Shown here piece after piece: positions 5,268-37,484 of a stretch of DNA of 64,000 nucleotides. The number at the start of each line of letters is the position of its first letter. Positions within the stretch are counted from its first letter, which is position 1. The stretch is from Octopus bimaculoides (lineage: Eukaryota). The notes beneath the pieces were generated by a model, which saw only the letters and a list, made by a program, of their open reading frames with translations, did not search any database and had not been told where the DNA came from. A program made the translations under genes and the position numbers. The DNA is taken from contig NC_068988.1 in assembly GCF_001194135.2 (NCBI RefSeq), positions 44,088,260 to 44,152,259 on the forward strand. The letters are read 5' to 3'.

Positions 5268-5314
<47 letters not shown>

Positions 5315-8900: not shown

Positions 8901-10507
8901 GTTGAAGTGTGCATTTTGTTAAAAGAAATCACACAGTTAAGAGTTAAGGTAGGAGTAATTAATTCTTGTTAATAGAGGCCGTTTTGTTAAGAGTAAAGCA
9001 CACACAACAAACCAGAATGTATTTCTCACTGTTGTAGCAGATGTGAGAGTATGTATGAAGAGAACAAGAATACATTAGGGTATCATGTGCATTGTTACAT
9101 ATAAAAAAAAGGTATGGATCTATTTTCTTAGATATTAAATATGGAAAAGCAATTCTGTTCAAAGAGGCAATGTTGATAGTTGCTCACTTAGAGCACTTAG
9201 AGACAATAGTTCCGTTATATGATCCTTGTAATCAAACACTTAAACAGTTAAAATGCTCATGACACAGTTTCATGAAGCAAATTATCACAGGGTCATTCCC
9301 AGCATTCAATAAAAACACTAAAATTGATCAAAAATGCATTTTCTTTAAAATCTAAAGAATCAGCTTCTACACCTGGCTCTGCTACCAAACTTATTAAAAC
9401 TTAAAATAAACAGCAGGGAAAAAGATGTCAGGCAAAAGATAGATCACTACGAGAGAGAACATATACAGACTCACAGAGATGATTCTAATTAAACAGGTGG
9501 TGGGCATCTAGAAAATATATCTTGTAATACCACTGACCATTATGACTGCAATCTGAACTAATAAGGGAATAACTATTGTTTCACCCAACCTGCTTGTTTT
9601 AACAGTTAAATTACCCTCAAATACTCTCTACAATCTTCAAACTAGGATCCACACGTAACAACCTTAAAATCGAATCCAGAATATGCCCGAAACATAAAAG
9701 AAAAGGGCTTCAGCAAGAATGCCAATCAAAGGATGTGAACCTGTTTATTAATTAGCAATCAATGGTATTAAAGGATTTCACCACATATCACAACAATATT
9801 TCGGTGTATATAACAGGAATAGTTATAATACCTAGAATCCATTGGGCAATAGCAGCATAACTGATAAATAGTTACTCTTCATGGAGTGTATCTAGAACAA
9901 GGCAAGTAGACAAAGTTCATTGCAAGGAAGAATTAAACTCTGTATTTCAAGCTATGACACAGATGAATTTTTTCAAGATGGCCTCTGAGAGGTTGCTTGG
10001 CCTATTATGCTTCTATTTAAAGTTTATTCAACTCAGTATTATCTGTCAGCATACTTCTTGGTTTTCCCCTTTCCTTTTGCTTTCTATTAAAAATTTCTGT
10101 AAATTATTTTATCTAAGTGTCCAAAATATTTTAGTTTTTTCTCTTTGATGGTGTCCATGCTTAGTTTTTGCCATTGTTAGTACTTCATCATTTGTTGTCT
10201 TCTGGATACTCCTCAAAAATTAACATCTGAATTGTGAGAGAATAGAGTCAAAGTCTGGGGGTCATTTCCAAAATTTATATCCTAATATCCTTTCCCCCAG
10301 GAATGCAATGCATAAATCAACATCTTATGAACTTTAAAATACCAGCTCAAAGCATAAACTTCATCATGCAACAATGTTATTCAACATACACTATTGATTT
10401 CTATATGAATGAATGTTTATCTGATACTTCTGAATCTTATAATTAAGTAAAAGCAGATTTGCTAAACTGAAATTGTGTTATTAACAGCATGATGCAACAA
10501 TCATTAC

Positions 10508-10573
10508 CCCAGCTTGCCAGTAAGACCAGGTCAGGATAACTGAGGTCAGCCGGATATCTATCTTTGAAATCTG
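10508..10573 (-). CDS. DOCK7: Candidate 63/66-nt cassette exon ((Q)ISKIDIRLTSVILTWSYWQAG)
   Basis: Long pyrimidine tract, NAGNAG acceptor (catcag/cag), donor GGG|gtaatg; phase 0->0, open. Confidence 0.4.
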
Positions 10574-11344
10574 CTGATGAAGACCTTCACAGGAAAGCCG
10601 AGAAGCAAGAGAAATGAAAGACATCAAAACCACTGGATATTCATTTCCAGTGAGCAGGTGTCATCATACAACTATTGCAACAATATAAAGAAATTAGGTG
10701 ATAACAGACTGATATGCAGACATGTTACTGGTGCCTGTGTATCATCACAATACACATATTTTGATGTCCTTACCTAATTAATTGGATTCAAACATAAGTA
10801 GAATGACACATTTGGAGAATAGGAATAGTTAATTCTTATAGTTAATTAAAGCTTCATTACCAGATTGGTACTTTATTTTACTGACAGTTGAGGGATAAAA
10901 GATAGAGTGGATCTCAACAGGATTTTAATGCAGAGCATAGACGGAAGACATAACAGTCACAAGGTAAATTGTCTGATGCTCTGCTGATTTTGCTAATCCA
11001 CTGAATAGCCTATGGAATTAACAGTGACCAATGGAAGTAACAAGGAAATAGAGGGATAATAGCTAAATCAAACCTAATTCTCGCAAATGCTTTAAAATGT
11101 AGAAAACAGCATGTAGCATTTTTAAGAGTGGTTAGTAAAATTTTCTTGTAGCTGTTAAATTTTTTTTTCAAACAAAGCCAAAACTAAATAAATAAAAATC
11201 AAAATTTCAAAGTAAAAAACCAGAGAAACCAGTCCAAATACCAAGCGAACAAACCCAACACAGGCAATGCTCAAGGCACAAATTCTTTTTGGAAAAAGAA
11301 AAAAAGAAAATCTGCGCGTGCTAAACAAAATTTGATGACTTTAC

Positions 11345-11416
11345 CAAGAGCACATTCAAAGATGTCGCAGATGTTGGTCTTGGCGGGCGGAATGGTAAGA
11401 TGTTGTCAAGGGTTAT
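11345..11416 (-). CDS. DOCK7: Candidate 72-nt cassette exon (ITLDNILPFRPPRPTSATSLNVLL)
   Basis: aaactatag|ATA...TTG|gtaaag; phase 0->0, open, CpG-containing island. Confidence 0.5.
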
Positions 11417-11841
11417 CTATAGTTTAGACCCAACATGAGAGTAAAAAAACAAAAAAAACAAAAGATGAAATGATGGTATAAATCAAAGAAAATATAAGCA
11501 AAAATTTTTTTAATAATTTCAGAAAAAATTTCCAAATAATCCATAATATCCTGTGTACAAGGGACATAGTATACATGGATAAACATAATGCAAATCTACT
11601 AGAGGAGGGTACAATGCTGCAAAACCAATTTAAACATTGTCACTTGTTTGGGACTATGTAAAATGAAACTGGTGAATTGTCATGCAGACAAATTCTTTAA
11701 AATAAAATTCTACATACCTTGTTCTGACTATTGTAGAAATAAAGACAAATCAAATATTGAGGAAAGATTAGGTTTATGCCTATAGCTAATAAACTAGAGT
11801 TGTTAGTAGATAATTAGCTAGTATGTATGTATTGATGAAAA

Positions 11842-11904
<63 letters not shown>

Positions 11905-14219
11905 TTGGGATTTCAGGATATGAAGGATGTGGTATGTTGCTTTGTGAGGAATTGGAGGAAACAAGGAAATTTGATCTAATTAAATGTCTATGAAAGAGAG
12001 AGGGATGGAGGGAATGAAAGGCCTGAATTAGAAGGAAATACATGAGTTTCATACAGAGGTAAGAAATTTCTATATGAAGAATGTGGTTCAGTTAAGGTTT
12101 TATATCAAAATGGAATAACTACAGGAAAAGACAAACGAAAATTGGTTTTGTTTGCAAAAGAGGAAAATTTTAAATACTTCTAAATGTATATCAAATGCCC
12201 AAATTTTGATGTGAAAATAATGACAAGATTTTATATGATTTTTTTTTAGATGTAGAGCATAGTTGAGTCAACTCCAGAATATAACTAGTATTTAAAGGTC
12301 ATAAGTGAATTAATGCAGAATCAGTTCCCGATATGATTTAAAATCAGAATGCAAGTTAACAAAATTAGCTGTCATGCATCTAGTTTGGTGCTCTGCTTCA
12401 TTAGTCTTTATCGTTTATATTGGACATATAAATATATTGTAAAAACTCAAACTAACCAATTAATTTGAAATACTTTTTTAGATAAAGTATTTAATACAAA
12501 TACCTTTATTAACTTACAGGTTTCAGTCACTGAAATGTGATCATACCTTCAAATAGTTAGGTTGACCTCAATACATATTTCAGTCAGGTAATTATTTTTA
12601 TCAATATCTGTTTATTGAAGGCTAAGCTATTTATTTTAACATAAAAGAATCCAACTCAACACACCAACAAACATAAATACATACATACATAGATCTTATT
12701 CCCACACTAATTTTGTACTATTGAGTGTACACACTAGTGTATTTGAAGTAAGATAATGTTAAACTGTCATCTGTCATACATCAGAAAGGAGACTTAAAGG
12801 AAATTCTAAATGAAAAGTTTGAGCATGTTTCAGCAAGTGAAAATTAGCCAAACATTTCTATCTAGAAATTGGGATAGGACAGTGGATAATGTAAAGCATC
12901 ACTGAAAGGCAGAGTTTGCTTTCGATCCACTTTTAAATGTCTGTGCCTTATCAATATCAAACACTGCACATGGAATATAAGTGGCCTCTTCTTTATCTTT
13001 GATTTCTAAATTTCTTTTGAAAGTTTATATGGTACAGCCCACCATACAACAAATACGTAGGAAAAAAAAAACAAAAAAAAAACAGCAATTCAAAAACAAA
13101 TCCATTGTTATTTTAATGATCATCTTTACTTATTCTATGGATGAAATGGCTTTTGAAATTTCAAGTATTAGTATGTTGTTAGATCAAGCATGTTACAGCA
13201 CAATGTCTTTAATGCTAACAACTTAACCATAGAATGGGAGTGCAATCTGTTGTCAGTAATCAAAATGATGTACCCTTTCCAGGAACTCAACACATTTGCT
13301 GAAGTAATACTAAGATGTGAAATTATAACTGCATTAATTATTATAATTTTATTATCTTAACTTCTACTTTACATCAACTTTATTGTTTGGGATAGTTTCC
13401 ATTCCAAAATGTTTGTATATTTGTGTTGTTAATATTTTCATAAATATTATGTATTTTGTGGGAATTAGGATGGGGGAATAGTATAGAGAAAATAGCCATT
13501 AAAAAATTTTATCAATTAACTAATTTATATCAGTATCATTAAGAGAATGTGATATTACTGACAATAACAATATCCCGGAAAAATATTAGATTTTGCTAAA
13601 AGATTTCTTAGATATTTAAGATATTTAGATTTTAAAAAATGTCTTTGAATAATGCATTCCAGTGTTGCAAAGGTAAAAAAAAACAAAAATAAATTAAAAA
13701 AACAACTATAACTTTTACGTAAATGATGATAAACTGAAGCAGACAATGTAGGACTAAATGATTTTACATAAAAACATTAAACAAAGATAAGTTATTTGCA
13801 TAAACGTAATGGAGAGAGAAATTATTTGCATAACCAAATGACCACATTAAATTTTTTTTAAAACAAAAGAACAAAATTAAAACAATACTACATACATAAA
13901 TAATTAAGTTACACTTAAACACAAAATAAACAAAATGAATATTTTTAGATTCTGAACAAAATTATACAAGATTATCATTGTTTTTAAAATTTAATATTTT
14001 TTTAAGTATAACAATTAAATATTTTAAGATTAATATAAAAAAAAAACATAAACTAAAATTATAACAATAAAAAAAATAAAGCATTAAATAAATTATAACT
14101 ATGTAATATTTTTAAAAATACAATTAAAAACTCAATGCACCTATATATTTTAACAAAAATAGTGATTAAAATTCGAAAAATTTGTAATTTTTAGTAGGTA
14201 AGAAAAATGTAGACATAAC

Positions 14220-14252
<33 letters not shown>

Positions 14253-16225
14253 TGTATTACACACACTTCTTACATTGGAGGTTTCCAGTTACCAGTGATT
14301 AATTTAATATTCTAATTTTGGTATGAGGCCAGCAATTTTTCAGGGTGGGGAAGCATATTAGTTACTTCGACCTCAATACTTGACTGGTATTCTAATTCAT
14401 CAACCGGAAAAGGATGAAAGGCAAAGCTGACTTTGGTGAGAGCTGAACATAAAGAACTGGAAGAAATGCCGCAAAGCATTCCGACTGATACACTGACAAT
14501 TCTGCCAGTCCGCCAATTTAATATTAATAAACAGGTTGGTCAATTTCAATATTTCCATACTGGAGGAGCAGAGGATTTTTTTTTTATATTTGATATGCTA
14601 ACAATTTAACTGAGAGGTAGAGACTATTCTCCAATCTATTCTCCTTTACTTTTGTCTGATACCAAGATTTGATATTGACTTGATGGGTCTCCAACTGATA
14701 CTAGACATGTCTAGTACCAGATGGCTTGGTACTTTATGAGTTAGTATTTCAGTTATTAGTTTACTCTACAAGCAAATAAATGAGTTGCAATATTTTTTTT
14801 TACATTGAGCTTCAGGCCTAAACTTAGATATGGACACCCAACTTTTTTACTAGGAATGGTGACATGTAGCCACTGGACTACTATTTACTTTGCTCTAGTA
14901 CCTAGTATCAGCTATGGTATGTAAGTCAAGTAATGAGCTGGTTCTCTGCAAAATGCACACTGGCCAGAGCAGACAGCAGATTAATTTCAAATGCAGTTTA
15001 CCTCATTAATCAATATATTCAATAAACCACAAAAGACCTTTGGTAAATAGAAACCTCCAAAGCAAACATTTATAACAGGATATTTTTCTTTGGTTTTTAA
15101 TCCATAAATATACATCTTTTTTTTTGTATTTTTTTAAAAGATATTAACAAATGAATAAAGAGGAAACAGAATAGCACATCAAATAAGATTAGTTGAAACC
15201 ACTAATATAGGTTAGAATAAACCACTAATATGGTAAGCAAATGACAGCAGGAAAGGAAAATTAAGGAAGATGGTATGTAGTCAAGGACGAAGAATTAGTA
15301 CATCTGTAAATTATTTTAAAAATTCATTATAATTGATAGAAGTTTCCCTTAAACTGTCAGTGCCATTGAGAGCATTAGAACTCTTGATCCCAAATCGCAA
15401 AAACTAATCAAGTGAATTTCAGTTTTTGAGTTGTTTGGATCTCAAAAACTAAAGAAATTCAAATCAGAAGAAATTAAAGAAATTCAGATCTTAAGAAGTG
15501 AAGATAAAAATTCAAAGCATAATTTGAAGATTACAAAGAAAAAAGTTTTTAAAAAAAAATAAATAAAAGCTCAGAATTAGAGCTACATTAGAATACAGTT
15601 GTTGATATTGTTGTTAGTCAGCAACTTAACTTCAATTCCCTTGTAAGATTATCGGACTTCACTGAAAATGTCATGACATTTATGCCAATCCTTAGTGACC
15701 AAGCAATTTTTCATTGACCAATATAATTTTGTTACTAATTAGTCAAATTACAATCCCATAAAAAAAAAGAAATAATGAGCTTAGAATAATAATTACAACA
15801 CATCAATTTGTAAAATAAACATAAATTATCAGTGCTGTAATAAATTAATTCTTAAAGTTAATAAAATATAAAACAAATACACATATATTAATATAATATA
15901 TATTTGCAATAAGTTATAGTTTGGTTTTCTTCTTTAAATATTCATATTTATAAGTAAAGAAAATCCTGTAATGAGAATTTATAACAAAATATCCATTCAT
16001 ATGCAATCCATGTAAATAGATATTCTTTTTAATGCTTGAGTAGATTTTTAAACTTTATAAATAACCCTTTTATTTGAAATCTTAGAACTAATATTTTGCT
16101 ACATAATAAATGCATGCACAACTTAAATGTGAACAAAAGGCATTATTTGAGTAAAAATACTAGTAGTAAGAGACATCTGTTCCAAGACAAAATATCCCAA
16201 ATTGATATCTCAAATCTACTTTATA

Positions 16226-16273
<48 letters not shown>

Positions 16274-17302
16274 TGTATAAATATATATGTTATGTGTAGT
16301 TGTGTCACTTAGTTTAAAGTCATGAGTATACTGATCAAACTGATAATCATCTGTTTATTAATTTCATTTATGGCTCAAAATATATAATAAACATATTTTT
16401 TTAAAATTCTTTTAGACAATGTATGTTTAAATACAAATGTCTAATTAGCATAATGCAATTATTGACAGTGTTATTAAGCCACAAAGATAAACATCAATAA
16501 TTTAGAGAACCGGAACCTATTAGAAAGAAATCACTTGAATTCTAGTATATTATATTATAATCTAAATAAATCAAATAATTAATAATAACTATTTCTGTTT
16601 TCATAAGACCCCTTGTGATAGACAAATGAAAAAGCTGATCATCAGAGACACGATCAACAATTGTTTATCTGTATAAGCTGAAATGTACTTTTTGAGCCAT
16701 TGCTACTCATATATACTTGACATCAGGGCAACAGTAATAGGATACTGAATGAATGCACTAATGCATTTACTGATTGTTGATGATGGACAGGAAAAATGAC
16801 TGTCATCATTTTGAACAATGTTCAGATATCAAGTACAAAAAAAAAACAATTAAAGCAGTTTAGGCTTGTGAATGTGTTGTCTATGAAACAATATCTATTT
16901 TTCTTGAAAAACCACTGTATGTAAATTGAACTAACTCAGAAGTATTAGAAATGGTTCCTGACAGACTTGTAAAATATTTTGTGTTGAAGTTTAATTTGTT
17001 TGGGTTGGATAGCTATTCAGCATCATACAAGAGAAGAAATTCATCCCAAGTACATGAATTTGAAAACTAAACATTGTGGTAGCAATGTCAGGTGATACGA
17101 TTCATGAGACCAACAGCATCAATAAAAGTATAGCCAATCTGGAAATCTGGGTGAGGACAACACTTCAACATATCAAAAGTCATTTGGATCAGTCATTGAT
17201 TTTCATGACAATGAGTTGATGTATATACTACTAGAATAATCAAAGAGTTTTTCAAAAGTAAGAAAATCCAAGAGCAGCAGTTGGCTACACAAGTCTTACA
17301 TT

Positions 17303-17548
17303 TTAACCCTTTAACATTAAACCAACCATATCTGGTCCCAAAATTCTACCTTTTTGATGTCCAAACCAAGCAGATCTGGTTTTCCGCATCTACCCTACAA
17401 TATCCTTCTAAAAATAAACAACCACATCACTGAAATCTTGAGTTATGCATGATTAATTCAAAACAAGGTGAATAAATAAGCATTGCACTTGATTTGACAG
17501 AGTAATCTGGTATTCCATAATTTGGTAAGCTGAATGCTAAAAGGTGAA
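17303..17548 (-). mobile_element. piggyBac-type MITE, family A, opposite orientation
   Basis: Internal sequence is the reverse complement of 52075-52304. Confidence 0.65.
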
Positions 17549-17957
17549 ATCTGATAGAAAAATTATGGTAATTAATTGGCATGCACACTGACATGAATGA
17601 ATTGTATGATTATATCATGAAAAAAAAAGAAACAAGAAATTTCAGGTATAATGTGAACATCAAACCTGTAGATTCAATGTCTCATAAATATGATTCTGCC
17701 ACAAGATTTTATACGACTTGATTTTCAATTCACACACCCTGTTTTGATGAAAAAAAATCATCTACTTTAAATGTTTTTAAATTGAGTGACATTCATTTTT
17801 GTGGCATTATTAATACTGTCAATAATTGCATTAGGCAAATTTTAAAATGGTTGAGATTAAAATATCATTTAAATGAATAAAAACAAAACTAATTAAATTT
17901 AATCATTTGAATACTCAGCTTTATATTAAGTAATCACACATGTGTGTATGTGTGTGA

Positions 17958-17999
<42 letters not shown>

Positions 18000-18221
18000 N
18001 NNNNNNNNNNNNNNNNNNNNNNNNNNNNNNNNNNNNNNNNNNNNNNNNNNNNNNNNNNNNNNNNNNNNNNNNNNNNNNNNNNNNNNNNNNNNNNNNNNNN
18101 NNNNNNNNNNNNNNNNNNNNNNNNNNNNNNNNNNNNNNNNNNNNNNNNNNNNNNNNNNNNNNNNNNNNNNNNNNNNNNNNNNNNNNNNNNNNNNNNNNNN
18201 NNNNNNNNNNNNNNNNNNNNN
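18000..18221. other. Assembly gap (222 N); further gaps at 18464-18488 and 22908-22964
   Basis: N runs adjacent to (TA)n/(GA)n microsatellites. Confidence 0.99.
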
Positions 18222-18419
18222 AATAGATTTCAAAATTCTGAGGATTTTATGGAACAAAGTATGTTAACTGAAATGGACAGACATTTTCTTTTTCTCTTGC
18301 CATTTTAAATATATATAAACAAGTTGTTATACTTAAAATATCAAGGCCACTGAATATTCTTAAGCAGTCCAGTACCCTTGTTCTTATTAACATCATTAAT
18401 ATTTAACCTTCTAATTGCA

Positions 18420-18463
<44 letters not shown>

Positions 18464-20320
18464 NNNNNNNNNNNNNNNNNNNNNNNNNAGTTGTATTAGC
18501 ATTGTAGTGAGGTGGAATTGATTAGAATTATAGAATGGGTTGGAAAGAAATTTATTGGGTGTTGTGCTAGCGTTTTAGAGAAGTGGAAAACTTCTGGTAA
18601 GCTGAGGCCCAGGTTTGGGTTCAGATTCCCATCACCAGATATCATTGAAATACATGTGATGTTAACCAGGCAAGAGTCTTGATCCTCATGTAACAAAGCT
18701 GTCTCATTTTGCTTCCTCAGAATATCTTTTCAACATTATTTCTTCAATAAACAACAAGATGATTGTGACAAAGCAATTGAAGAATTTAGCAGTCTGAAAG
18801 AGCTAAACATCCATCACAAGTAACCAATGAAAGTAGAAGCCGGAGAAGCGATTTGATTGTTAACATTAACACTGTTGCATCACTGAGCACTAGGTTTCAC
18901 AGATTTTTCTACAACACATTTCTGACAATAATATCTGTTAATTACCCTGCCATATTTCTTTTGGCTGTAGCTAGGCCTCTCTACAGAGTAAAAACAGAGG
19001 TTATTTTTAATGCTAGAATAAAATATAAATATAACACAATGTTACTGCAAAGTGCCAAGTGTCTCAAATGACCAGAGAACAACTGATCAAGAAATACTAT
19101 AACAGAACTAAATGGCAAGCCCTGTACAATTGTACAATTCTGCTGGTATTATTCAACTTTTGGAATTAAAGCAGAAATCCTCAGTTTCATCACCCAGCCT
19201 GCAGGCAATTATAGCCAACCCCACCACAAATAACATGCTAAAGTCATAAAAAATGGAAGGTCACATTGAATAATACAGTTTTAGGTTTACAAAAACGTTA
19301 GCATGGTTGTGGATAGAAATCTTGATCAGGTCTGCTTGATCAGGGTTGATTTTTGGACTAAATGATAACAATAAAAGATGGAACATTCTCATTGAATTGT
19401 CCCATAAGTATGACTAACATAGATATGTATATGGAAAACATAGAGCTGATGTTGTTGTTAAGCCACAGGTAAATTTTAAAGCAGCAGATGTGTGATCAAA
19501 AGCATCCAAGCCAAAACTGCTGAATGTGTCCTTTCTTTTGTAAGACAACAGGGTGTAACTTGAGATAAAGAAAACAAGTTGAGGGACCATGGGATCACGA
19601 AATGATGGCTAACAGGTAATGCAATTCAATAACGTTTAGTGGGATCTGAAGCTCCAAAACTGACTATTCCAGGCGCTTCCTACTTCTCCAATACATCATT
19701 TGTACAATAATGGATGCTATAGAGTAGTGTTACAATTTGTCCCTAATCGTTGTAGGGTGGTAAGGAAAAAGGAGGAAGAGGAAGAAGCAGAAATCACATG
19801 ATTAATAAGCAGCAGTACTAATAAGATAGATGTCTGTAAAGAAAACAATATAATAATTTTTAACTTAGGCCCAAAGCCATAACTTTGGTGGAATGAAGGG
19901 TATAATCAATAATGTTAACCCCAGTACTAGACTGGTACTTATTTTATCAACCCCAGAAGGATGAAAGGCTAAGTTGACCTTGGCAAGAATAAACTCAAAA
20001 TGTAAAGGGTTGCAACTAAATACTACAATGCATTTTGTTCAACACTCTACTAATTTTGCTAATCCTTCATAATGATAAAAATAATAATTTAGCAAAGTTA
20101 GAATATAAATCAGACAACCATCCAACCAACCAGCAAAATATTAAAAAAAAAAATAGTAAAACAATGTACACCAGCAGGGAACTACCATTTTAGAGGTTAC
20201 TTAGGTTACGGCTGTAGTGGTGGTAGTGGTGGTGGTGGTGGCTGATACTAAAGGTGGTCAGTACATCATAAGACACAAGTTTGGAACAAATACAAATACA
20301 CACAAAGCAGTTCATAGTAC

Positions 20321-20563
20321 CTGCCCATATGACTCTTCTTTGCCGACACCACGCCCCAGGAATGTCCCCGTACCCCGAAACAGATCTTGAGACTTTCTCT
20401 GAATGCCTTCCCAGATTTGCTCATGAAATGATTGGGATTTGATCATGCCATTGCCTTTGTAAGTGGAGCCCCGTGGTGTTGGGCTATCCTGCCAGTCTTC
20501 CAGGGTTTCCTCGGAACCGGAAAACTGAGACAACATATCACAGTTCATCAGAACCCATTTTGC
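20321..20563 (-). CDS. DOCK7: Probable additional 243-nt exon: AKWVLMNCDMLSQFSGSEETLEDWQDSPTPRGSTYKGNGMIKSQSFHEQIWEGIQRKSQDLFRGTGTFLGRGVGKEESYGQ
   Basis: Very strong acceptor (ttttttcttcttcatctcctccctgttgtattctag), donor CAG|gtacta; phase 0->0 is the only frame open across it; markedly GC-richer than the surrounding intron. Confidence 0.72.
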
Positions 20564-20966
20564 CTAGAATACAACAGGGAGGAGATGAAGAAGAAAAAAA
20601 AAATAGAAGAGAGACTGGGGTAACGATAAGAGCTGCATCTACCTGGCTGCAGCCACTGACTCAGTTGTCTTGTTTTACAGCAGAAAACAGACAGCCATGT
20701 GAACACTAGCAACATTGCAGTGCATCAACTGCAAGATTTTGGAAGCAACAACACTTTACACATCATATATATTACATAAAGTTGAATGATCACACATTTC
20801 AATGAAAGAACAAACCCATGACAACAGAGAGAAAACAGACCCCCTCCCCGCAAAAAAAAAAATACAAAGCAAAAAATCTGGTGAAAATGTCAAGTTGGAA
20901 TTGACCATAAAGTCAATTTTAACTTGACTCTTTCAACAAGATAATTTTCAGATTAATTTCTAATCC

Positions 20967-21169
20967 TTAAACCCTCAAGCATTTAAACAGGCTGTATCCG
21001 ACCCAAATATTCTACCTGTTTTATGGTCAAACCAGCTAGATCATTCTAAAAATAAAACAGCCACATCATCAAAATCTTGAAGCTACAAGATAACACATGA
21101 TGAATTCAAATCAATGGAAATAAATATGCATCACATTTGACATACTAAATCAAAATGCTGAAGAGTTAA
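20967..21169 (-). mobile_element. piggyBac-type MITE, family A, opposite orientation
   Basis: Internal similarity and TTAA ends. Confidence 0.65.
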
Positions 21170-21477
21170 ACTAGGGGTCCACAACTACCAGACCAAGGAT
21201 CATTTGATACCAGGCCAGACAGAAGGAATATATATTCTAAAATATTATTTCCTTTTTATTGATTACTACAGTCTGCAGGGTGTTTTTATTTTTGTTTTTC
21301 ACATTATATATGTATTGCAAACGTAATATAAGTTGCTATATTTCATTCCATAATGGCTATCTCTGAAGAGTGCAGGGTTGCATAATCAGAATGCTACCTA
21401 ACACTCTGCTGAACCCCTAGTACAAAAATGATTGGTAACATCAGCTGTAATGGATATATCATACAGTACACTGCAAG

Positions 21478-21645
21478 GTGGTTGGTTTAGGAGGGGCATC
21501 TAGCCATAAAAACCATACCAAAGCAGTCAAAGAAGGGCATCCAGCCATAAAAACCATACCAAAGCAGTTCTGCCTGAACAGCTCTTGTCAAACTATCCAA
21601 CCCATGCCAGCATGGAAGGCAGACATTAAACAATGATGATGATGG
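21478..21645 (+). mobile_element. Older RTE 3' tail copy with an internal ~40-bp tandem duplication
   Basis: gggcatc.agccataaaaaccataccaaagcag occurs twice, then tccaacccatgccagcatggaa...(gat)n. Confidence 0.6.
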
Positions 21646-22791
21646 TGATTATATATATATGTAGTAATTATGCACATGATCCCCTGATCTGTGAAAAACT
21701 TTCTTGCATGAAACCAGTCCATTGGGCAAAAAAAAAAAAAAAGGTTAGGGACTGCTGCTTTAAATCTAATTAAAAATTGTCTAAAAATCTTTTTATGTGG
21801 ACATGTTTGTTATATAAACAAACTTAATTGTATTTTGTTTCATTTTCATTGATGATTTCCAGATACATGATCAACAGTTTTGAGAGAGAATATAAGAGCA
21901 TAATAAATTATGTATACCTTAGTTTTGGTTAGTATATAAAAGAATATAGTTAAATTCTCTAAGGCACTTGTGATTCTGCTACTCCTCTATTCTTAATAAT
22001 AATGACGATGGTAATTCATGGTAACGAGGTCGACAATTATAGAAATAGTAAAATAAATAAATTCATAAACAGGCACGAGATCAGAAAGTTGGAGCTGATT
22101 GAATCAACTCCATTTCCTGATTGGAAGGATGAAAGTGAAGTAAATTTTGGCGCGGTTTGAACTCAGAACATAAAGAACCAGAACAAATACTGCAACACAT
22201 TTTGTCCAACACTCTTATGATTCTGCCAACCCACTGCTCATAATAATAATAATGATGATGATGATGATGATGATTATAATCCTTTCTACCATAGATAATA
22301 TTAATTCTTTCTATTATTATTATTATGATGATGATGATGATGATGACTTCTTGGTGTTATTGCTTCAGGAAACAGCTTGCAGGAAGATGCAGAGCAAATG
22401 TCAGCTTGTTTAGACTGAGTCAGTTTTGTGTGTCTGTGTGTGTATGTACATATAAATATAAAAGAAATATGCATATTTATGTCTTAAAAAGAAATGTGGC
22501 TTCATTTTGTTACATGTTACAGCATGCCATAGACATTTAGCGAAAAGTAGGACAAAAGATGTTTTGGAATATGTTATTGTTTTTTTTTGTTTTTGTTTTT
22601 GAAGTCCAGTAGCCACACTCTTATATTACCAGGTTCCACAGCGAGGCAGCAACACTGGGTGAGAGGTGAAAGAAAGAAATTGGACTGCAGCATTAATGTA
22701 CTAAGCAGAAAATAAAAAAAGAATAATAATAAAAGAAACTCAAGATCATGCAAAGGCAAGAAGTTACACACATACACATCAATTATATATA

Positions 22792-22835
<44 letters not shown>

Positions 22836-23624
22836 AATATATATTTTATATATAAATATGTTATATATATATATACATATGTATGTATATGTACATATAT
22901 GCATATANNNNNNNNNNNNNNNNNNNNNNNNNNNNNNNNNNNNNNNNNNNNNNNNNNNNNNNNNATATATATGTATGTATGTAAAGAAAGTAAGGAGTAC
23001 AGGGAAAGACACAAATGAAAGGAGACAATCAGGAGAAAATATTCCGTTCAGTCAACCTGCAACACATACACATGTATGCATATATAAATGAATAAACATT
23101 TAAAATGCTTCAACCAAATCATTTGACCACAAGTGCAGCAAAAAAAAACAAAAAAACCCAAAAAGACACAGAGGATGGATGGGTTGAAGATAGACAAAGG
23201 ACATGTTGAAATCATGCCAGTATGGGGAAAAAGTGGATGTAAAACTATACTGTTTTATAGTGCAGGAAAACATGAAATAGTCAGAAGACAACACAACCTG
23301 ATGCCCCTCACTAAAATATAACCAACAAATAGAGTAAAAAAAAAGGGGAAAAATAAATCCCTATAGAATTATTTGATGTACTCTATTGAGCACTATGAAA
23401 TAAAAAGGATGTAGCTTTAAAAGGAAACAGAAACCTTCTAAAAAATAATTTTGTTGGTGAGTGGGAGTTACTGGGACCTTACACTGGCATGGAGCTCAAC
23501 AGAGAGGCATAATTAAATTAACCTCAGTATATGACTGGTATTTAATTCCTCAACTCCGGGATTGGAAGGTAGAGTTCTATTCTGGGGGAGATGAAGGAAC
23601 AAAATTAAATACTGGTTTCAAATT

Positions 23625-23931
23625 CTGGCACAAGGCCAGCAATTTTGGGGGCAGGGATAAGTTGATTACATCAACCCTAGTGCTCAAGTGATTTCTTATT
23701 TTATTGACCCCAAAAGGATGAAAGGCAAAGTTGACCTTGATGCAATATGAACTCAGAATGAACATATATGGATGAAATGCTACCAAACATTTTGCCTGGT
23801 ATGGTAAAGATTCTTATTTCTTTATTGCTCACAAGGGGTTAAACATAGAGGGAACAAACAAGGACAGACAAAGGGATTAAGTCGATTACATCAACCCCAG
23901 TGCGTGGTAAAGATTCTGCCAGTTCACTGCT
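23625..23931 (-). mobile_element. Family-1 SINE interrupted by a 90-bp truncated SINE tail (23815-23904) with a 13-bp TSD
   Basis: TGGTAAAGATTCT repeated at 23802-23814 and 23905-23917. Confidence 0.75.
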
Positions 23932-25016
23932 CTGAACAAAACTAAATATTGCAAAACATTTTTTTTGTGACCCTTCAAATTTTTGCTGGTCTATTTTATT
24001 GGGGACAGTGATAAATTCACGTGCATGTAAATGAGCAAGTGGTCAGATAACACTGTAGTGGACCAACATGTTGACAGTGTTGAAATATCCACTGTTATTT
24101 TAGCCTTTTGGTTAGATTCAATTGAGCAGACCTATGGTAAATGGCATTTCAGCTGTGAACATTTAGTTTTTTTTTCCCCCCAACTAAAATGTGTCTAAGG
24201 CTACATGATCCAATGTCTTCATTAAGACTATAGAATTATGATTTCATGGAAATTTGGTGCCATGTCTAACAGGTTAAACAACTCATAAAGATTCTTGACA
24301 GTGACACAAAACCTTAAAAAGGTAGGGGCGAAGTCAATTGAATCAAGCCCAGTACATAACTGGTGCTTGTATCATAGACAATGTCAAGACCATTACAAAT
24401 ATCAGCAAGATCTGAATTAGGGGGAAAAAAGAAAAATAGAGGGACAAAAAATTTAGAGCTGCATTTTCTTGGTTTGTTTTCCCCCTGGATTTAACACTAA
24501 ATATACATATCCAATGCCCAACTGATATACAGCAGGGATGTATATGACTCCGATATATTACAAATGAAAAACAAATAGCTATATTACTGAATAAATATGA
24601 TATAGGATTTTTAACTGGATATATAAATGTAACATTGTACTTTATGACATTTTAGCAGTGAACAAAATATAAAGTTTGTCTACTGATGTTTTTCATTTCC
24701 AACTAAAAAAAAGTATTATTATAGAATACTAATTGTATATCAAGTAGCATCTGGAGACATACATACCTGACCAGACACCATCAAATAAGTATGTGATAGT
24801 CTGTCTGCCCTTTTGCACACTAGAGGACACACACATGACACTGCCAGAAACAATACTCCACAAACAGGTAAGAAAAATTATACATACATACATAATTGAA
24901 AACATGATTTTATTTTATCAAATACTGATATGTTATAAATTAATTTATCATTATTACTCCATAAGGTATTGAATATTTTTTTGTGGATTTGTTGGAAGTG
25001 AGTGGGTCAAATGATG

Positions 25017-25060
<44 letters not shown>

Positions 25061-25063
<3 letters not shown>

Positions 25064-25262
25064 CCTTTCTACTACATGCATAAGGCCTGAATTTTTGCAG
25101 GGAGGGGGCCAGTCAATTAGATTGATCCAGTATGCAACTAATACTTAATTTATCAACCCCGAAAGGACGAAAAGCGAGGTTGACTTTGGCAGAATTTGAA
25201 CTCAGAACATAAAGACAGACGAAATGCCACTAAGCATTTTGCCCAGCGTGCTAACTGCCTTA
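25061..25262 (-). mobile_element. tRNA-derived SINE, family 1, flanked by (AAT)n tracts
   Basis: Same core; head partly deleted. Confidence 0.75.
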
Positions 25263-25279
25263 ATAATAATAATAATAAT

Positions 25280-25325
<46 letters not shown>

Positions 25326-27190
25326 GTAAGAAGAAGAAGAAAAATATAATTTTTCCAACCATCCATGTTAGAAAATAGTAATTATAATAATAGCAGGTCG
25401 ATAGCATCAAGTTTTCAATAAAATATGCTTCAATATATATATACATAAGTGTGTATGTTGTATCATGCTTTTTACATGCAAACAAAGCTAAAAGGTTAAT
25501 CCATGCCCAATAATAAATTTCAAAACAAATAATGACTTCAGTGTTGCAGCCATTTTTTTTTCTTGAAACCTTTATCAATTGATTGGTTGTATATGATATT
25601 GTTTCATATTTGTTATATTACAAACACAGGAGAAGGGAACAGAAAATAGAAAAAGTGCTTTTTGTTATGTCGAAGACTAGCTATATAATACAATATTGGA
25701 AATATTGGTTTTGTTTATTCCAGTAGGCATTTTTATATAATAATATACATGATATCTCTGTGTTTGTAATTGCTCAAGAATAAACTTTCGGCATAATAGA
25801 GAAATAATTAGAAAGAGAATGAATGAGTATGTGTGTGTGTGAAGTTATAAAAAGAAATAATCTTGCAAGTATGTTTTATATCAGCGACCTACAACATGAT
25901 CCAAGTCAACCACCAACTGTCCATAGCAAAGTTTTGGTGGTTCACATAGTTTTATATCCTACTGTATTGCATAATGCAATTAAAAATAAAATTTATTTCA
26001 AGAATTTGGCAATCCTTAAAGTTTTTTTCTCATGAATTTTGGGAATCTCCTTCTGAAAAAAGTCATGTATCACTATTTTATACTAAAAACTACATGATTT
26101 TTCTCTTGTTTCTAAATATTGACCCATGGCCACAGTTTTGAAGGAAGAGAATGTAATTGATTTAATTGCCCTCCAACAATTTAACTGCAATGAGATTATA
26201 ATTAAGCACATAAAGAGATGTAAATATAAACTGCAGGGCATTTTGTTTGGTATGCTATCAATTCTACCAAGCCATATAAAGACACACACACACACACAAA
26301 GACTTCCACATAGTTTCTGTCTCCAAAATTTCACTCAAGTCATTGATCAATCAGAAGCTATGGTAGACGACAATCACCCAAAATGCCATAGAATATCAAT
26401 TGAATTCAAACTGACATAGTTGTAATGTGAATGTATTAATAGTTATACTGTATTCGAGGAAGTATCTTCCTTTTTTAGATTCTTACACTGAAATATGTTT
26501 ATCTTGTGTTTGTAAAGCATCACCAGCATTGCATCATGTATACTGGTTTTAGAATATTCTCCTTAGCCCTTAGCAAAGGAGTGCATTTTGAAACAGGAGT
26601 TGACACTGATAGAAACATTACATTTAACTATGTATACATAGTGTAGCAAATAGGTTAAAGGAAAATGACCACATAATTCTGAATGAATGTACGTAACCAG
26701 AAAGAAATTTCCCATATAATTATATATATGAGATATGTTTGCGTGTGTGTGTGTGTGTGTGCGCACAAAATGAGAGAAGGAGATGAAGTGTACATGTTTT
26801 GTGTTATGCTTCAGGAGGAACTATCTTTAGAAATCTCCCACCAGTCTAACTTGATTAGCCTTAATGTGTAAGTACGAAACCTTTTGATAAAACCAGGAAG
26901 TATTTGAGAGGATTTCGAAATACCACAACAAGATTCACTTGGTGTGCAGATGTACAGCAAATGCCTCAAGTTGAAACAGGGTGTTAAGAGTCATGCTTGA
27001 AGACTGACAGAATAACCACCCGGCCTGATGTCACCCATGAAAATACAAATCTGATTAATCACAAACATCATCAGTCTATACACAAAGACAATACAAAATC
27101 TATCAACAATAAACTACACAGAATCACCACAGCAGAGTTGCTAGTCTTGTTTGTATTGCAGTCATTAAGTCATTGTTTATAATCATAATA

Positions 27191-27402
27191 ATCTTCTCTA
27201 CTCTAGGTACAAGGCCTGGAATTTGAAGGGAGTGGGGTAGTCTATCACGTCAACCCCAGTACCTAACTGGTACTCAATTTATCAACCCCGAAAGGATGAA
27301 AGGCAAAGTTAACCTCAGTGGGATTTGAACTCTGAACACGGAGACAAGAAATGCCACTAAGCATTTGGTCCATCATGCTAATGGTCCTGCCAGCTTGCCA
27401 CC

Positions 27403-27404
<2 letters not shown>
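27191..27404 (-). mobile_element. tRNA-derived SINE, family 1
   Basis: Same layout as 5761-5982; adjacent (AAT)n at 27404-27482. Confidence 0.8.
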
Positions 27405-27460
<56 letters not shown>

Positions 27461-27904
27461 TAATAATAATAATAATAATAATCTGTACTGCTAATAATAA
27501 TTTCTAAGATAGGTGCTAAGCCATCAATTTAGAGGAGAGATTTGTGAATAAAATCAATGTAGTTCTTGGGTGATAATTTATTTTATTGATTACAAAACAA
27601 AAGGATGAAAAATAAAGTAAACTTTAACATGATTTGCATTTTTGAGTCCTTTTGATACTGACCCACTTGAAACTGCTCCTGGTTCTACGATTCAAATTCC
27701 TAGTTTTAAAATGATCTTAAAAACTTCCATCAGAATTTCATATTACTTTATGTTCAAACTCCAGCTTAATAACGACAAAGTCATTTTCATATAAACTCTG
27801 TTAGTTTCAAAATTAATTGAAACAACAAACGCTGTGGTATTTCAACAGAAATATTGTAACAAAAAAAAAAGTGAAATGTATGTAGCTAAATAATTAATGG
27901 CTTA

Positions 27905-28115
27905 AAATTTTGGCACAAGGCCAGCAACTTCAGGCAGGAATCAATTACACTGATTCCAGTAGTCAACTGGTACTTATTTTATTGACCCCCCACCCCCACA
28001 AAAGGATGAAAGGTAAAGTTGACCTTGGTGGAATTTGAACTCAGTATGTAAAGACAGACCAAATGCTGTTAAGCATTTTGCCTGGCATGGTAATGATTCT
28101 GGCAGCTCACCACCT
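27905..28115 (-). mobile_element. tRNA-derived SINE, family 1
   Basis: Same layout as 5761-5982. Confidence 0.8.
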
Positions 28116-28145
28116 TTATATAACAAAATATTACGTGTTTTGGGT

Positions 28146-28461
28146 GAAGGCACATGGCTCAGTTGTTAGAGCAACAGGCTCACAATCATGAGGTAGTGAG
28201 TTCAATTCCCAGACCGGGTTGTGTATTGTGTTCCTGAGAAAGACACTTTACTTTACGTTGCTCTAGTTCATTCATCTGTAGAAATGAGGTACGATGTCGC
28301 TGATGCCAAGCTGTATTGGCCTTTGCCTTTCCCATTGGTGGTGTGGAGAGGGGAGGTTGGTATGCTGGTCTTCCATAAACAACCTTGCCTGGACTTGTAC
28401 CTCGGAGGGGAAACTTTCTAGGTGCAATCCTATGGTCATTCATGACCGAAGGAGGTCTTTA
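28146..28461 (+). mobile_element. tRNA-derived CORE-like SINE, family 3
   Basis: tggctcagttgttagagc, gagttcaattcc, core; 3' end ggtcattcatgaccgaagg shared with the antisense copy at 56444-56778. Confidence 0.75.
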
Positions 28462-29581
28462 TTTAGGAGTGGGGTGGGGTGGAAGTGACAAAAACATTAC
28501 AGTAACTTAATGACATTAATACATGGACAGCAACAACATTAAGAAACAAGAAAGACACAAACTATAAAGTCACAAAATACACATAACACCCATCCACCCA
28601 CCCACACCCCAAATTATTTAGTAAAAAATAGTTTATAAAAACGGAGACAACGATGATGATGATGATGATTACGATGATAATTACAATGGTTTCTTACACA
28701 GCAAGGCCACAAATTTTGAGGGAGGGGTACAGGTGATTTAATCAACATTAATATTTTGATTAGTATTTCTTTTATTAACAAAGGGAAAGATGGAAATAAA
28801 TTAACCTTGACAGGATTTGAACTTAAAATGTAAACTAAACACTGCAAGGCCTATTTTCTCCATCTTTCCCTGGAAGTTCACCATTAATGAATAATAGTTA
28901 ATTATAGTCACAATAATAATAATAAAAGAAAACAAACAAGAAATGAATTATATATATATATAACAAAAACTAAAATAGAAAAAAAGGTTTAATGTTATCA
29001 GTAAAAAAAAAACAAAAAAAAATTCTTTATAAAAATAGATTTTGTTAATTATGAATTCAAATGAATTAAAGCAAACATGCAAAAGAAGTATTTAAAAGAA
29101 AAAGAATGAGCAGCTCTAATGTTAGTGGTGACTTGTCTCTATGTTTATCAAGAAGCCTGTTGAGTCAATTGAAAAATTAGGTTAGTAAAGAAGAGCGATA
29201 CTGAAGATGCTTGACAAACAGAAGACATTGAAACAAAAGAGACAGAGAGAAAGATTGAGGGCAAGGGAGAGAGAGAGAGTAGTAGTAGTAGTAGTAGTAG
29301 TAGTATACAGATGAAAAAAAAAAAACATCGAAACAAATAATAAGTAAACGAGACAGAATTTCTTAGAATAAAAGCAGAACAAACAACTGAGAAAGCATTA
29401 GCATCACTGTCATGGTAGTTGACAAAGATGGTGACAAAGAAATTAAATATACAAATAAATAAAAAAAAGACACTACAGTTTGGAATAGCTTTGCACATAG
29501 AACAGGCTTGCAATGTCAAGAAAAATGAAATATTTATGCAAATTATTTTCAAGCATGCACTTCCATACATGCACATATATG

Positions 29582-29620
<39 letters not shown>

Positions 29621-29623
<3 letters not shown>

Positions 29624-29784
29624 TATTTAAAATTATAATACAGGGTATCTAAGAGATACCGCCACACTGAAAAATAGCAGTCAAATCTTGACTCTAAAAC
29701 CACAATAAATGTCCACATGGCATAAGGAGTGAAGACGAAGATAGGGTATCTCTTAGATACCCTGTATTATAATTTTAAATAATT
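29621..29784. repeat. Perfect 40-bp inverted repeat with an 84-nt spacer
   Basis: 29621-29660 is the exact reverse complement of 29745-29784. Confidence 0.9.
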
Positions 29785-30079
29785 ATTACCTTTGATGGTT
29801 TTTATTCCCATGCTGGCCACTTGATAAGATCAATATTTTAAATATCGATCTTATTCTTATTTATATATAGATATATATATACACACTTTCATATGCTTTT
29901 GTATAATTGGCAACTAGTACATAAAATAAGCAAAATTTAGCAGACAAGTAACTTAGTCTTATATATATGAGCTATGTTGAAATTGTCTTAAAATCCACAT
30001 GATAAATGTAATGAAAACTTATTAAAAAAAAAAAAGATAGATACTTGAATGACCATGGTTCAAAACCAAGTTTTAGCCA

Positions 30080-30122
<43 letters not shown>

Positions 30123-30267
30123 AATTAAACAATGGATTATGATGTTGATTTCAAAAGAAAATGCATAATAAACAATAAATAATATTATCACGAATAAAAA
30201 ATATATATGATGTATATCTTTATATCCTACTTAACATGGATTTACTGTTAGAATGCCGTATTACTAG

Positions 30268-30361
30268 GTATTTGCCTTGAGAGATCCTCTCATATAAACA
30301 TGTAGTTCTAAAAAGTACAAGCACTATACATTTATATAGGAAGATCTCTCAAGGCAAATAC
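30268..30361. repeat. 31-bp imperfect inverted repeat with a 32-nt loop
   Basis: GTATTTGCCTTGAGAGATC / GATCTCTCAAGGCAAATAC perfect for 19 bp, then extends imperfectly. Confidence 0.8.
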
Positions 30362-30395
30362 TGCAGTATTATTGTGTCTTAACAATACATTCATG

Positions 30396-30623
30396 TTAAC
30401 CCTTTTGATACCAGCCCCGCAGAAACTGCCTCTGGCTCTGTAGTACAAATGTCTTGTTTTCAAAAGTTCTGAATTAGAATCTTCCACCAAACCTTAGTCA
30501 CAATTTATGTTCCTAACACTAACATAATGATAACTAAATCATTTTATTGAATTCTTTGTTATGCTTAAAATTAATTGAAAAAAATAGAGCATCTCAACAG
30601 AAATATGGTAACAAAAGGGTTAA
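30396..30623 (+). mobile_element. piggyBac-type MITE, family B
   Basis: TTAACCCTTTTGATACC...GGTAACAAAAGGGTTAA (16/17 inverted match); diverged copies at about 55860-56123 and 27650-27865. Confidence 0.75.
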
Positions 30624-30724
30624 GTAGAGTATAAAGATTACCATTCAGTATTAATACTGCTTCTATGTATATATAGCTGAAAAACACCATGCTAAAGCAG
30701 ACCACACTAGTGCAGGTACCACAT

Positions 30725-30893
30725 AAGAGGCACCCAGTCTGCTCTGTAAAGTAGTGGGCATTAGGAAGGGCATCCAGAAATAAAAAAAACCAAAACACAC
30801 AGTGGAACCTGGTGCAGTACTCTGGCTTACCAGCTTCAGTCATACCATCCAACTCAAGCCAGCATAGAAGAAGGCTGTTAAATGATGATGATA
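30725..30893 (+). mobile_element. Older RTE 3' tail copy
   Basis: ttaggaagggcatccag...ccatccaactcaagccagcatagaa...aatgatgatgat. Confidence 0.6.
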
Positions 30894-31023
30894 CATGTGT
30901 GCTTGTTTTTACATAGAGTTACAGCAAAAACAATTGCACATTAGACTGAAGGATTACTCAATACTTTTTGTAGAGTACAAATTTATAAATATTACTTAAC
31001 AAGAATAATATTGATAGTGACTT

Positions 31024-31088
31024 TGAAGTTTCAGCCAGCTAAGCCATCATTGGCCTGTCCAATGATGGCTTAACTGGTTGAAATTTCA
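31024..31088. repeat. 30-bp hairpin with a 5-nt loop
   Basis: 27/30 complementary arms. Confidence 0.85.
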
Positions 31089-33463: not shown

Positions 33464-33475
33464 CTCATTGGGAGT
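33464..33475 (-). CDS. DOCK7: Candidate 12-nt microexon (TPNE)
   Basis: Long pyrimidine tract ending ttccatctttgcag|ACTCCCAATGAG|gtaagc; phase 0->0. Confidence 0.5.
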
Positions 33476-34215
33476 CTGCAAAGATGGAATTTTGAAGAAC
33501 AATGAGAATAGATAAGACTGACACATCTAAATTATGTTATGCAGATACTTGTGTGTGTGCGTGTGTATGTGCATGCATGTGTGTGTGTGTTTCGGTCTTT
33601 TTGGTGACTGATTCTGCAAACAGACTCTCACTAAAATGATTTAATACAATATTAAATTTTAAATAGTGTTCTACTAATTTCTTTCTTTTTCTTTAGATAC
33701 ATACATACCACTGACATATATGCATGCTGTTTTAGTGGAGTAGAAAGGGGCAAGTGGAATAGGGTGCTTTGGCAAACAGTGTGGCATATATGTGTTACCT
33801 GAGGGTCAAAATATATCTATATCCACTTCAAAATATATCTATAAACCCTATTTTGGGGGGATTGAGTATTTTTTATTGTGTTTGTAAACACAAAATGTTT
33901 TTATGTGTGTGCATGTGTAAGGGAGATTTTGCTGCTACTTCTACCAAGTTGAATGACCACACAGAGGTTTTCTAATTGATTGTGATATATCATTTAAATC
34001 AATACTGCATAGTATTAACATGTCTTGCCATAGTTGTTTCACTTTTTGTCTTCTCTAACTAATTCTATCCAGTTAGATATAGCTCTGTTGGAGTCCTGCT
34101 TTATTTAATCCATTTCTAAATGAAGATATTACTTTTAAACAATATTATAACTCTATAATATTTAAATTACGATAAAGGTAAGCAAAATTTTGCTTTTAGA
34201 AGCACTTAGATATAT

Positions 34216-34634
34216 TGAAAGGTACAGATAAGGAAATAATTTATTCTCAAATGCAGCATAATGCTGATAGAATAGCAAGAACAGGATAAAATATCCATAT
34301 TTGGTGGAAAAATTTTGTCAGCAGCCAGCCATGACACTCAAACTCACATCCCTGAGTACCAGTCAAGTGCTTTACCATTAAGCTAAATGGCCCACTGACA
34401 AATTAATCTGCAATTTTTGAACTTATAAATCTAGCTCTATAAGACACTGTATGTTAAATTCAAATTATGATAAATGCAAACAAAGTTTGCTTTTAGAAGT
34501 GCTGAGATGTATTGAAAGATACAGATAAAGAAATGATTTATTCTCAAATGTAGAATAATGCTGATAGAACAGTAGGGACAGGATAAAATATCCATATTTT
34601 GCAGAAAAAATTGTCCGTGATTAGTGGTCAAGTG

Positions 34635-34665
<31 letters not shown>

Positions 34666-35554: not shown

Positions 35555-35585
<31 letters not shown>

Positions 35586-35602
35586 TTGAGTGAGACACAA
35601 AC

Positions 35603-35641
35603 CTTGAGAGGAGTGGTAGCCTGCTCGAGAATGAAGCTTCC
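35603..35641 (-). CDS. DOCK7: Candidate 39-nt cassette exon (GSFILEQATTPLK)
   Basis: ctaatactttccag|GGA...AAG|gtttgt; phase 0->0, GC-rich island, branch-like ctaat. Confidence 0.4.

Positions 35642-37403: not shown

Positions 37404-37408
<5 letters not shown>

Positions 37409-37461: not shown

Positions 37462-37484
<23 letters not shown>

Follow-up and report, generated by a model that had tools for sequence, protein, structure and literature searches.

The locus examined here raises the question of whether an 81-codon open stretch, lying alone in a large intron, is a coding exon of the surrounding DOCK gene and, if so, how that gene uses it. The window, by which we mean the whole 64,000-nucleotide stretch of Octopus bimaculoides DNA that was analysed, carries the stretch on its minus strand. 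An earlier note, made from the letters alone, had described a 243-nt interval of coding-like composition, open only in phase 0, and had given no strand.

20321..20563, minus strand: DOCK-C exon, 243 nt, 81 codons, frame-preserving, encoding AKWVLMNCDMLSQFSGSEETLEDWQDSPTPRGSTYKGNGMIKSQSFHEQIWEGIQRKSQDLFRGTGTFLGRGVGKEESYGQ

Read from 20563 to 20321, frame 1 of the minus strand contains 81 codons and no stops (AKWVLMNCDM...KEESYGQ); frames 2 and 3 of that strand contain three stops each, and the plus-strand translation is interrupted by stops. The single open phase was thus confirmed and the strand could be added. The exon is 49.8% GC against 33.6% for the window and forms a sharp island about 300–400 nt wide, in keeping with the composition proposed for it.

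Minus-strand open stretches throughout the window match DOCK-C proteins. The gastropod protein GFN96684.1 (P0018 among our homologues) gave 14 ordered, colinear HSPs when compared with the window by tblastn (43–74% identity), and tick and fish DOCK-C fragments also gave ordered HSPs. Judged by these matches, the host is a guanine-nucleotide-exchange-factor (GEF) gene of the DOCK-C subfamily (DOCK6/7/8-type) and is DOCK7-like. The DOCK-type C2 domain (DHR-1) lies partly in the window: 63458–63619 and 62670–62744 align to residues 125–209 of GFN96684.1, inside its PF14429 DOCK-C2 match (66–244). The window stops at about residue 1090 of the same protein, and DHR-2, which starts at residue 1268, would fall past window coordinate 1. 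ORFs for DHR-2 lobe A lie downstream in three related loci, L003, L004 and L007. The intron that holds the open stretch is bounded as follows (here and below, a slash marks an exon–intron boundary).

44525..44701, minus strand: upstream canonical exon, ...LNADATHNLLICFVWVLKNADYAVLKSWWSELPLTRLSRIVEIIYFVVSNFEYK, C-terminus ...VVSNFEYK, phase-0 end at TAC AAG/gtaaat
4741..44524, minus strand: host intron, 39,784 nt, phase 0 at both ends
4593..4740, minus strand: downstream canonical exon, GKKAMSQYSQQTFRRSVDMKTRLEEAILGHSNARTEMMLRRRQTSFSNS, phase-0 start at tgtcag/GGT AAG AAA (GKK)
18000..18221, 18464..18488 and 22908..22964: assembly gaps (N runs) in the host intron, 222, 25 and 57 nt

The exon divides the intron into an upstream part of 23,961 nt and a downstream part of 15,580 nt. 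Because the intron is in phase 0 at both ends, inclusion of the 243 nt preserves the reading frame, and the agreement of phase between exon and host intron that had been claimed from the letters was borne out by both flanking exons. The 222- and 25-nt N runs lie about 2 kb downstream of the exon on the gene strand.

The splice signals at the two ends of the exon differ greatly in quality.

20564..20620, minus strand: acceptor region, AG at 20565-20564
20315..20320, minus strand: intron bases of the donor, gtacta, after an exon that ends in CAG

The acceptor reads ...ctctcttctattttttttttcttcttcatctcctccctgttgtattctag/GCAAAATGG. A 45-nt stretch before the exon (20576–20620) is at least 90% pyrimidine and rich in CUCU/UCUU, and pyrimidine content at positions −43 to −3 is 88%, a value equalled by 0.09% of the 3321 AG dinucleotides on the same strand. 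By the same measure, four canonical acceptor regions in the host gene have pyrimidine fractions of 0.57–0.72. The tract had been called exceptionally long, and these two comparisons justify the term. We speculate that its CUCU/UCUU-rich sequence could serve as a platform for a PTB-type repressor. The donor, also read correctly at the outset as CAG/gtacta, is GGGCAG/gtactatg in full; it matches 6 of the 9 consensus positions, lacks the +4A and +5G, and ties with the lowest of the 13 canonical donors read (range 6–8), most host-gene donors being gtaagt or gtgagt.

Structure of this kind is not in itself beyond chance, because 19 regions on the gene strand are bounded by AG...GT and free of stops for at least 240 nt, transposon ORFs and microsatellites among them. 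This lends some initial credit to the reading that the interval is a chance open frame, or transposon-derived or otherwise unrelated intronic sequence, as does the presence of repeats some 300 nt away on either side.

19850..20063 and 20970..21092: repeat-family members flanking the exon, within about 300–400 nt on both sides

The exon is single-copy, with no second copy of its interval within the 64-kb window, and its peptide has no Pfam relative at E≤1 and no transposable-element domain, so that the claim of no recognisable transposon motif stood. The same reading must also account for eight independent sequences that carry significant homologues at this position of the intron and show dN/dS near 0.1 (see below), and is effectively refuted. 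What establishes the exon as real is mainly the homology, together with the pyrimidine tract and the GC island.

Several other elements were seen in the window. Members of a repeat family (71–85% identity) occur at 19850–20063, 5761–5912, 14370–14436, 23695–23760, 25142–25241, 27238–27315, 27956–28053 and 38440–38546; the first of these is found about 260 nt beyond the exon donor in the direction of the gene, and the exon is not a member of the family. Between the DOCK exons at 46.4 kb and 44.5 kb, 45114–45744 (minus strand) holds a mariner/Tc1-type transposase remnant in two adjacent frames, ...HPPYSPDLAPTDYYVF..., which matches PF01359 Transposase_1 (E=7e-9) and, more weakly, DDE_3. An ORF-bearing element, GLVKPDGNTRLQSDLAEFLQLDALPNANHSESVVGAFTCHPHENGHARNGVF..., is present in both orientations (1–156, minus; 60875–61009, plus; 61744–62115, minus), and a near-identical intronic segment is duplicated about 1.5 kb apart at 56041–56645 and 57600–58012 (minus strand), its ORFs ...VVTDTVQCTGVVFFDQVTKVLLNFLTYKVQSTIKKYKGRVNSLISICEI and FIVYSSSSPGWGG... 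each occurring twice; neither the element nor these ORFs match Pfam.

Homologues of the peptide were found by an exhaustive phmmer scan of the 81 residues against 1.84 billion representative proteins, one per 50%-identity cluster, which returned 14 matches at E≤1e-3, five of them at E≤1e-10. One of them was GFN96684.1, a 'dedicator of cytokinesis protein 7-like' product of the sacoglossan sea slug Plakobranchus ocellatus (Gastropoda) that has DOCK-C2 plus DHR-2 lobes A, B and C by Pfam. Its residues 912–965 match window 20321–20482 (tblastn, E=4.7e-10) between the FEYK and GKK exons, and the homologous insert sits exactly at the FEYK/G(K/R)(K/R) junction, reading ...LSVSNFEYK-AKWATPSV...WSEDTLEEW...RPKSHTLPKSQSLHEQLWEGIQRKSVDLLRG...SKEDSPAQQ-GRRAAAQCSQQTLKKSVDMKSRLEEAILG or, more widely, ...LSVSNFEYK-AKWATPSVVKQWRRTWSEDTLEEW...RPKSHTLPKSQSLHEQLWEGIQRKSVDLLRGGSNLLTRTNSKEDSPAQQ-GRRAAAQCSQQTLKKSVDMKSRLEEAILG. 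The exon is annotated in Plakobranchus, and the comparison with mollusc DOCK7 that the earlier note had pointed to gives a clear match. The P. ocellatus gene models combined ab initio predictors with Trinity/Exonerate evidence and hints from RNA-seq junctions (PMC8079154). The gastropod insert (approximately residues 841–965) resembles that of the window in its NFEYK/insert/G(K/R)(K/R)A junction, its AKW start and Q end, and its S-E-[ED]-T-L-E-E/D-W and HEQLWEGIQRKS.DLLRG blocks; it differs in its length, about 125 residues, in a long expansion rich in Gly, Ala and Ser within the variable middle, and in retaining RPKSHTLPKS, a motif that the window copy has lost.

The homologues other than GFN96684.1 are exon-sized ORFs called on genomic contigs rather than spliced products. 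Many of them start with (Q)AKW, that is cag/GCN AAR TGG, and end with Q/V, that is CAG/gt. A profile search of a 5.8-billion-sequence set gave 22 matches, all unnamed exon-sized ORFs, and missed GFN96684.1; no spliced transcript or named protein with the exon peptide was among them. A word-indexed search with the exon peptide alone gave no match, a false negative since P0008 shares an identical 13-residue stretch with the query, and because of that miss the negatives of this search were treated as weak. When the query comprised the exon with its flanks, the same search gave seven matches, none over the exon, which established the canonical FEYK–GKK junction. No protein containing the window's own peptide was found in the databases searched, negatives that are likewise weak, and an exact look-up of the ORF product (M6 to stop, by prokaryote-style calling) found it not on record. 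A profile search of the PDB yielded no relative (best E=0.61). The methodological lesson is that word-indexed searching was blind to a peptide with clear homologues, which the exhaustive scan alone recovered.

Two candidate relationships were rejected. The large repeat proteins P0016 and P0021 were judged spurious homologues, their short matches being multiplied by internal repeats and falling on the lineage-specific part of the peptide. Within that part, residues 28–46 (window 20425–20481, minus strand; SPTPRGSTYKGNGMIKSQS) matched the repeat unit ...GNGTLTPRGITYQGQGMIKNQTA... of the 2105-residue P0016 in five stretches (E=2e-7), which is probably chance inflated by the repeats. An origin of the exon by ancient tandem duplication of the GKK exon was likewise rejected (hhalign probability 1.4%).

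To place the exon in its genomic setting in other species, eight loci were taken from six ENA assemblies; seven of them, from five assemblies, carry the exon (L001, L002 and L004–L008). The ENA analyses behind the loci are ERZ26859072, ERZ25071447, ERZ25073280, ERZ26273219, ERZ25069866 and ERZ25069865. In these seven the order of exons is FEYK/R, cassette, GKK, RWRKDQ and VEGNLAAEV. The cassettes measure 243, 258, 237, 237, 237, 264 and 264 nt, all divisible by 3, and every copy starts AG/GCN AA(A/C) TGG and ends CAG/gt. The donors read gtaccg, gtcggt, gtactg, gtactt (twice) and gtatat (twice), with +5G in none. Nei–Gojobori dN/dS was 0.10 for L004/L007 (dN 0.064, dS 0.635) and 0.16 for L004/L005; against the window copy, synonymous differences are saturated (pS approximately 0.79) with pN of 0.28–0.39. 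Nucleotide similarity among L004, L005 and L007 extends from about 10–18 nt upstream of the exon to about 3 nt downstream. Low dN/dS together with conservation that ends at the exon edges marks a coding exon under purifying selection, and the unsaturated locus pairs show such selection in these other lineages.

The comparison fixes the existence, position, boundaries, frame and conservation of the exon, along with its inclusion in one gastropod gene model. The central claim of the earlier note, a real DOCK coding exon, is thus strongly upheld by a homologous insert in GFN96684.1 and in seven loci at dN/dS of 0.10–0.16. We consider it very probable that 20321–20563 (minus strand) is a genuine, evolutionarily old DOCK-C coding exon, and prefer to read it as a regulated cassette that carries a disordered regulatory insert; we infer that it is spliced in O. 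bimaculoides.

The eighth locus, L003 (ENA ERZ25069865), was reached via P0007, and its VEG exon is the closest to that of the window. No cassette was found in L003 positions 1–8525, the 8.5 kb upstream of its GKK exon, at word size 2 and E≤10. The canonical exons of L003 are close to those of L004 and L007, and L004, L007 and L008 carry the cassette 1–2.9 kb upstream; either L003 has lost the exon or its intron is much longer.

Two observations concern the neighbouring gene structure. GKK and RWRKDQ form a single exon in L003 (8526–8813), L004 (11889–12164), L007 (11192–11461) and also L008, and are separated by an intron in the window (GKK exon 4593–4740, RWRKDQ exon approximately 2934–3050), L001, L002 and L005/L006; the split is a difference in intron presence or absence among lineages. 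P0001, a transcript-like Logan contig of 421 aa, has six DOCK exons spliced and then reads through the donor after ...NFEYR into VYFYIY..., and the intron of L004 (compare 3062–3150) begins VYSYIY.... This may reflect late removal of the long intron with the cassette, or an alternative transcript end inside that intron.

Alignment of the window peptide with its 20 other homologues revealed 28 columns that are at least 90% conserved among those homologues, grouped in three blocks: S17-x-x-T20-L-E-x-W24; R34-x-K36-S37-x-x-L40-P41-K42-S43-x-S45; and L50-W-E-G-x-Q-x-K-S-x-D-x-L-x-G64, followed by ...R71...K75-x-D77...Q81. The window copy retains 20 of the 28, and with them both the terminal CAG and all of the WEGIQRKSQD core. 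Of its eight deviations, four lie in the second block, whose sequence here is T-Y-K-G-N-G-M-I-K-S, and these near-invariant residues are lost in the window copy only. The motifs singled out from the letters fared unevenly: SEETLEDW and KSQS.HEQ are conserved, whereas SPTPRGS is lineage-specific and takes the place of a motif conserved everywhere else. The lineage-specific residues 28–46 replace the conserved R-x-K-S-x-x-L-P-K-S block. The 14-3-3 mode-1 pattern is [RK]-S-x-pS/T-x-P. In other species the second block would fit both a basophilic-kinase context and this pattern.

The peptide as a whole is most likely intrinsically disordered over much of its length, as its composition and predicted structure suggest. 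About 69% of its residues are S, T, G, P, Q, E, K, D, R or N, and AlphaFold2, run with a 21-sequence alignment, gave a mean pLDDT of 60 and mostly low-confidence coil. The sole element predicted with moderate confidence is a helix at residues 46–63 (FHEQIWEGIQRKSQDLFR; 10-residue block means 74–78), which covers the most conserved stretch, HEQ[LI]WEGIQRKSQDL. A disordered, phospho-regulated linker, as the earlier note had supposed, is plausible given the low AlphaFold2 confidence, the Ser-rich composition and the conserved S/T positions. Another Ser/Pro-rich linker was seen in the upstream canonical exon at 55147–55293 (minus strand), ...LGRPSSLPVNKPGYQRSSSDPDLSGSTPTTPDAE..., which is 69% identical to the gastropod protein; it is probably phosphorylated, and its R-P-S-S-L-P motif recalls the cassette's K-S-x-[ST]-L-P block.

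The loss of four near-invariant residues from R-x-K-S-x-x-L-P in the window copy alone could reflect relaxed constraint here. Taken further, the exon might be functional in other invertebrates and, in this lineage, unspliced or disappearing, surviving as an open frame; such a relic would also fit the lack of any protein with the window's peptide in the databases searched, and the suggestion from L003 that the exon is absent or far displaced in some lineages. It is nevertheless improbable: despite a 34%-GC background rich in stops, the 81 codons have stayed open; neither splice site is damaged, and the acceptor is exceptional; the GC island remains sharp, and some seven in ten of the highly conserved positions are kept.

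If the exon is real, the choice between regulated and constitutive inclusion is closer, and we lean, by somewhat more than an even judgement, towards a regulated cassette. This reading is favoured because a very strong acceptor is paired with a conserved weak donor, the exon is symmetric in phase, and its length stays a multiple of 3 despite indels; skipping would preserve the frame at each of the lengths found (237, 243, 258 and 264 nt), with phase 0 on both sides. That the DOCK-C protein of these lineages always has the segment, with no splicing regulation, is quite possible, if short of probable; what would then matter is its presence in gene models. The exon is included in the sole full-length named model over the locus (GFN96684.1) and occurs in seven of the eight related loci, its acceptor is very strong, and inter-locus conservation scarcely enters the introns. 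Conservation that short in the flanks is seen more typically with constitutive exons than with alternative exons under tight regulation. A constitutive exon is harder to reconcile with a donor that is off consensus in all eight copies, with a symmetry (phase 0-0, length divisible by 3) that every lineage maintains despite indels, so that skipping stays possible, with an exon standing by itself midway through a 40-kb intron, and with tick and fish DOCK-C proteins that work without it.

These last proteins define the canonical arrangement of DOCK-C (DOCK6/7/8; Drosophila Zir). The tick protein P0003 and the fish proteins P0002, P0004 and P0005 have the same flanking exons, ...CFEYK then GKK...(K/R)LE(E/D)AILG...RWRK...VEGNLATE, and join FEYK directly to GKK, with nothing like the cassette between. 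The earlier note had recognised no vertebrate counterpart. The three fish and the tick agree with this, and the exhaustive phmmer scan contained no vertebrate match, DOCK or other; the absence is unproven to the extent that the scan covered one representative per 50%-identity cluster and clustering could hide isoforms.

A cassette is known in the same linker of human DOCK7. Exon 23 of that gene, 93 nt long and frame-preserving, falls within the linker between DHR-1 and DHR-2, close to the FQYM–GKR junction. Its position is after GKRYIAR, where it aligns to a portion of the canonical GKK exon instead of preceding that exon. The human sequence '...DRKSQTLPVS...' resembles 'RPKSHTLPKS' and would align better with the canonical SQQT(M/L)KKS of the GKK exon. 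The human and octopus exons would be of the same kind, regulated cassettes of DOCK-C genes, the human one being an alternative cassette repressed by ESRP2 (PMC6788855). No sequence relationship between the two emerged, the exhaustive scan having recovered no vertebrate DOCK. A literature search found no paper that describes the octopus exon.

According to the regulated-cassette model, splicing of the exon, which lies about 24 kb into the approximately 40-kb phase-0 intron, would add 81 residues between ...SNFEYK and GKKAMSQ..., placing the insert between DHR-1/C2 and the catalytic DHR-2 domain with the frame unchanged. The insert would bring three conserved elements: an acidic S/T cluster that ends in an invariant Trp, S-x-[ED]-T-L-E-[DE]-W; a basic R-x-K-S-x-[ST]-L-P-K-S, found in nearly all other species and degenerated here to T-Y-K-G-N-G-M-I-K-S; and a putative amphipathic helix, HEQ[LI]WEGIQRKSQD[LF][LF]RG. 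A disordered insert with phosphorylatable motifs and a helix would add or mask an interaction surface, and inclusion of the exon would supply a module for phosphorylation or partner binding by which GEF localisation or activity would be tuned.

A bolder version would make the insert an ancient, invertebrate-specific phospho-switch of DOCK-C factors, missing in vertebrates and in the tick model, in which a CK2-type acidic S/T–Trp cluster, a 14-3-3-like site and the helix are included in a tissue-specific manner and have been rewired here. We regard this as unlikely. In it, K-S-x-[ST]-L-P would be the basophilic-kinase or 14-3-3 mode-1-like site and would act on GEF localisation or autoinhibition; if true, the window lineage would have dropped the 14-3-3-like site yet kept the helix, a rewired switch.

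The find is sound at the level of annotation and is not a new kind of biology; nor is the exon itself unseen, since a publicly available gene model of a gastropod already contains it. It is a segment that is old and under purifying selection, and it comes without a described function, a Pfam family or a solved structure. For those who study DOCK-C factors it offers a candidate regulatory element, as well as a marker exon with which gain and loss can be traced across invertebrates. For the octopus gene the model is corrected or confirmed: its DOCK7-like protein can carry 81 extra residues in the linker that joins the membrane-targeting DHR-1 to the catalytic DHR-2.
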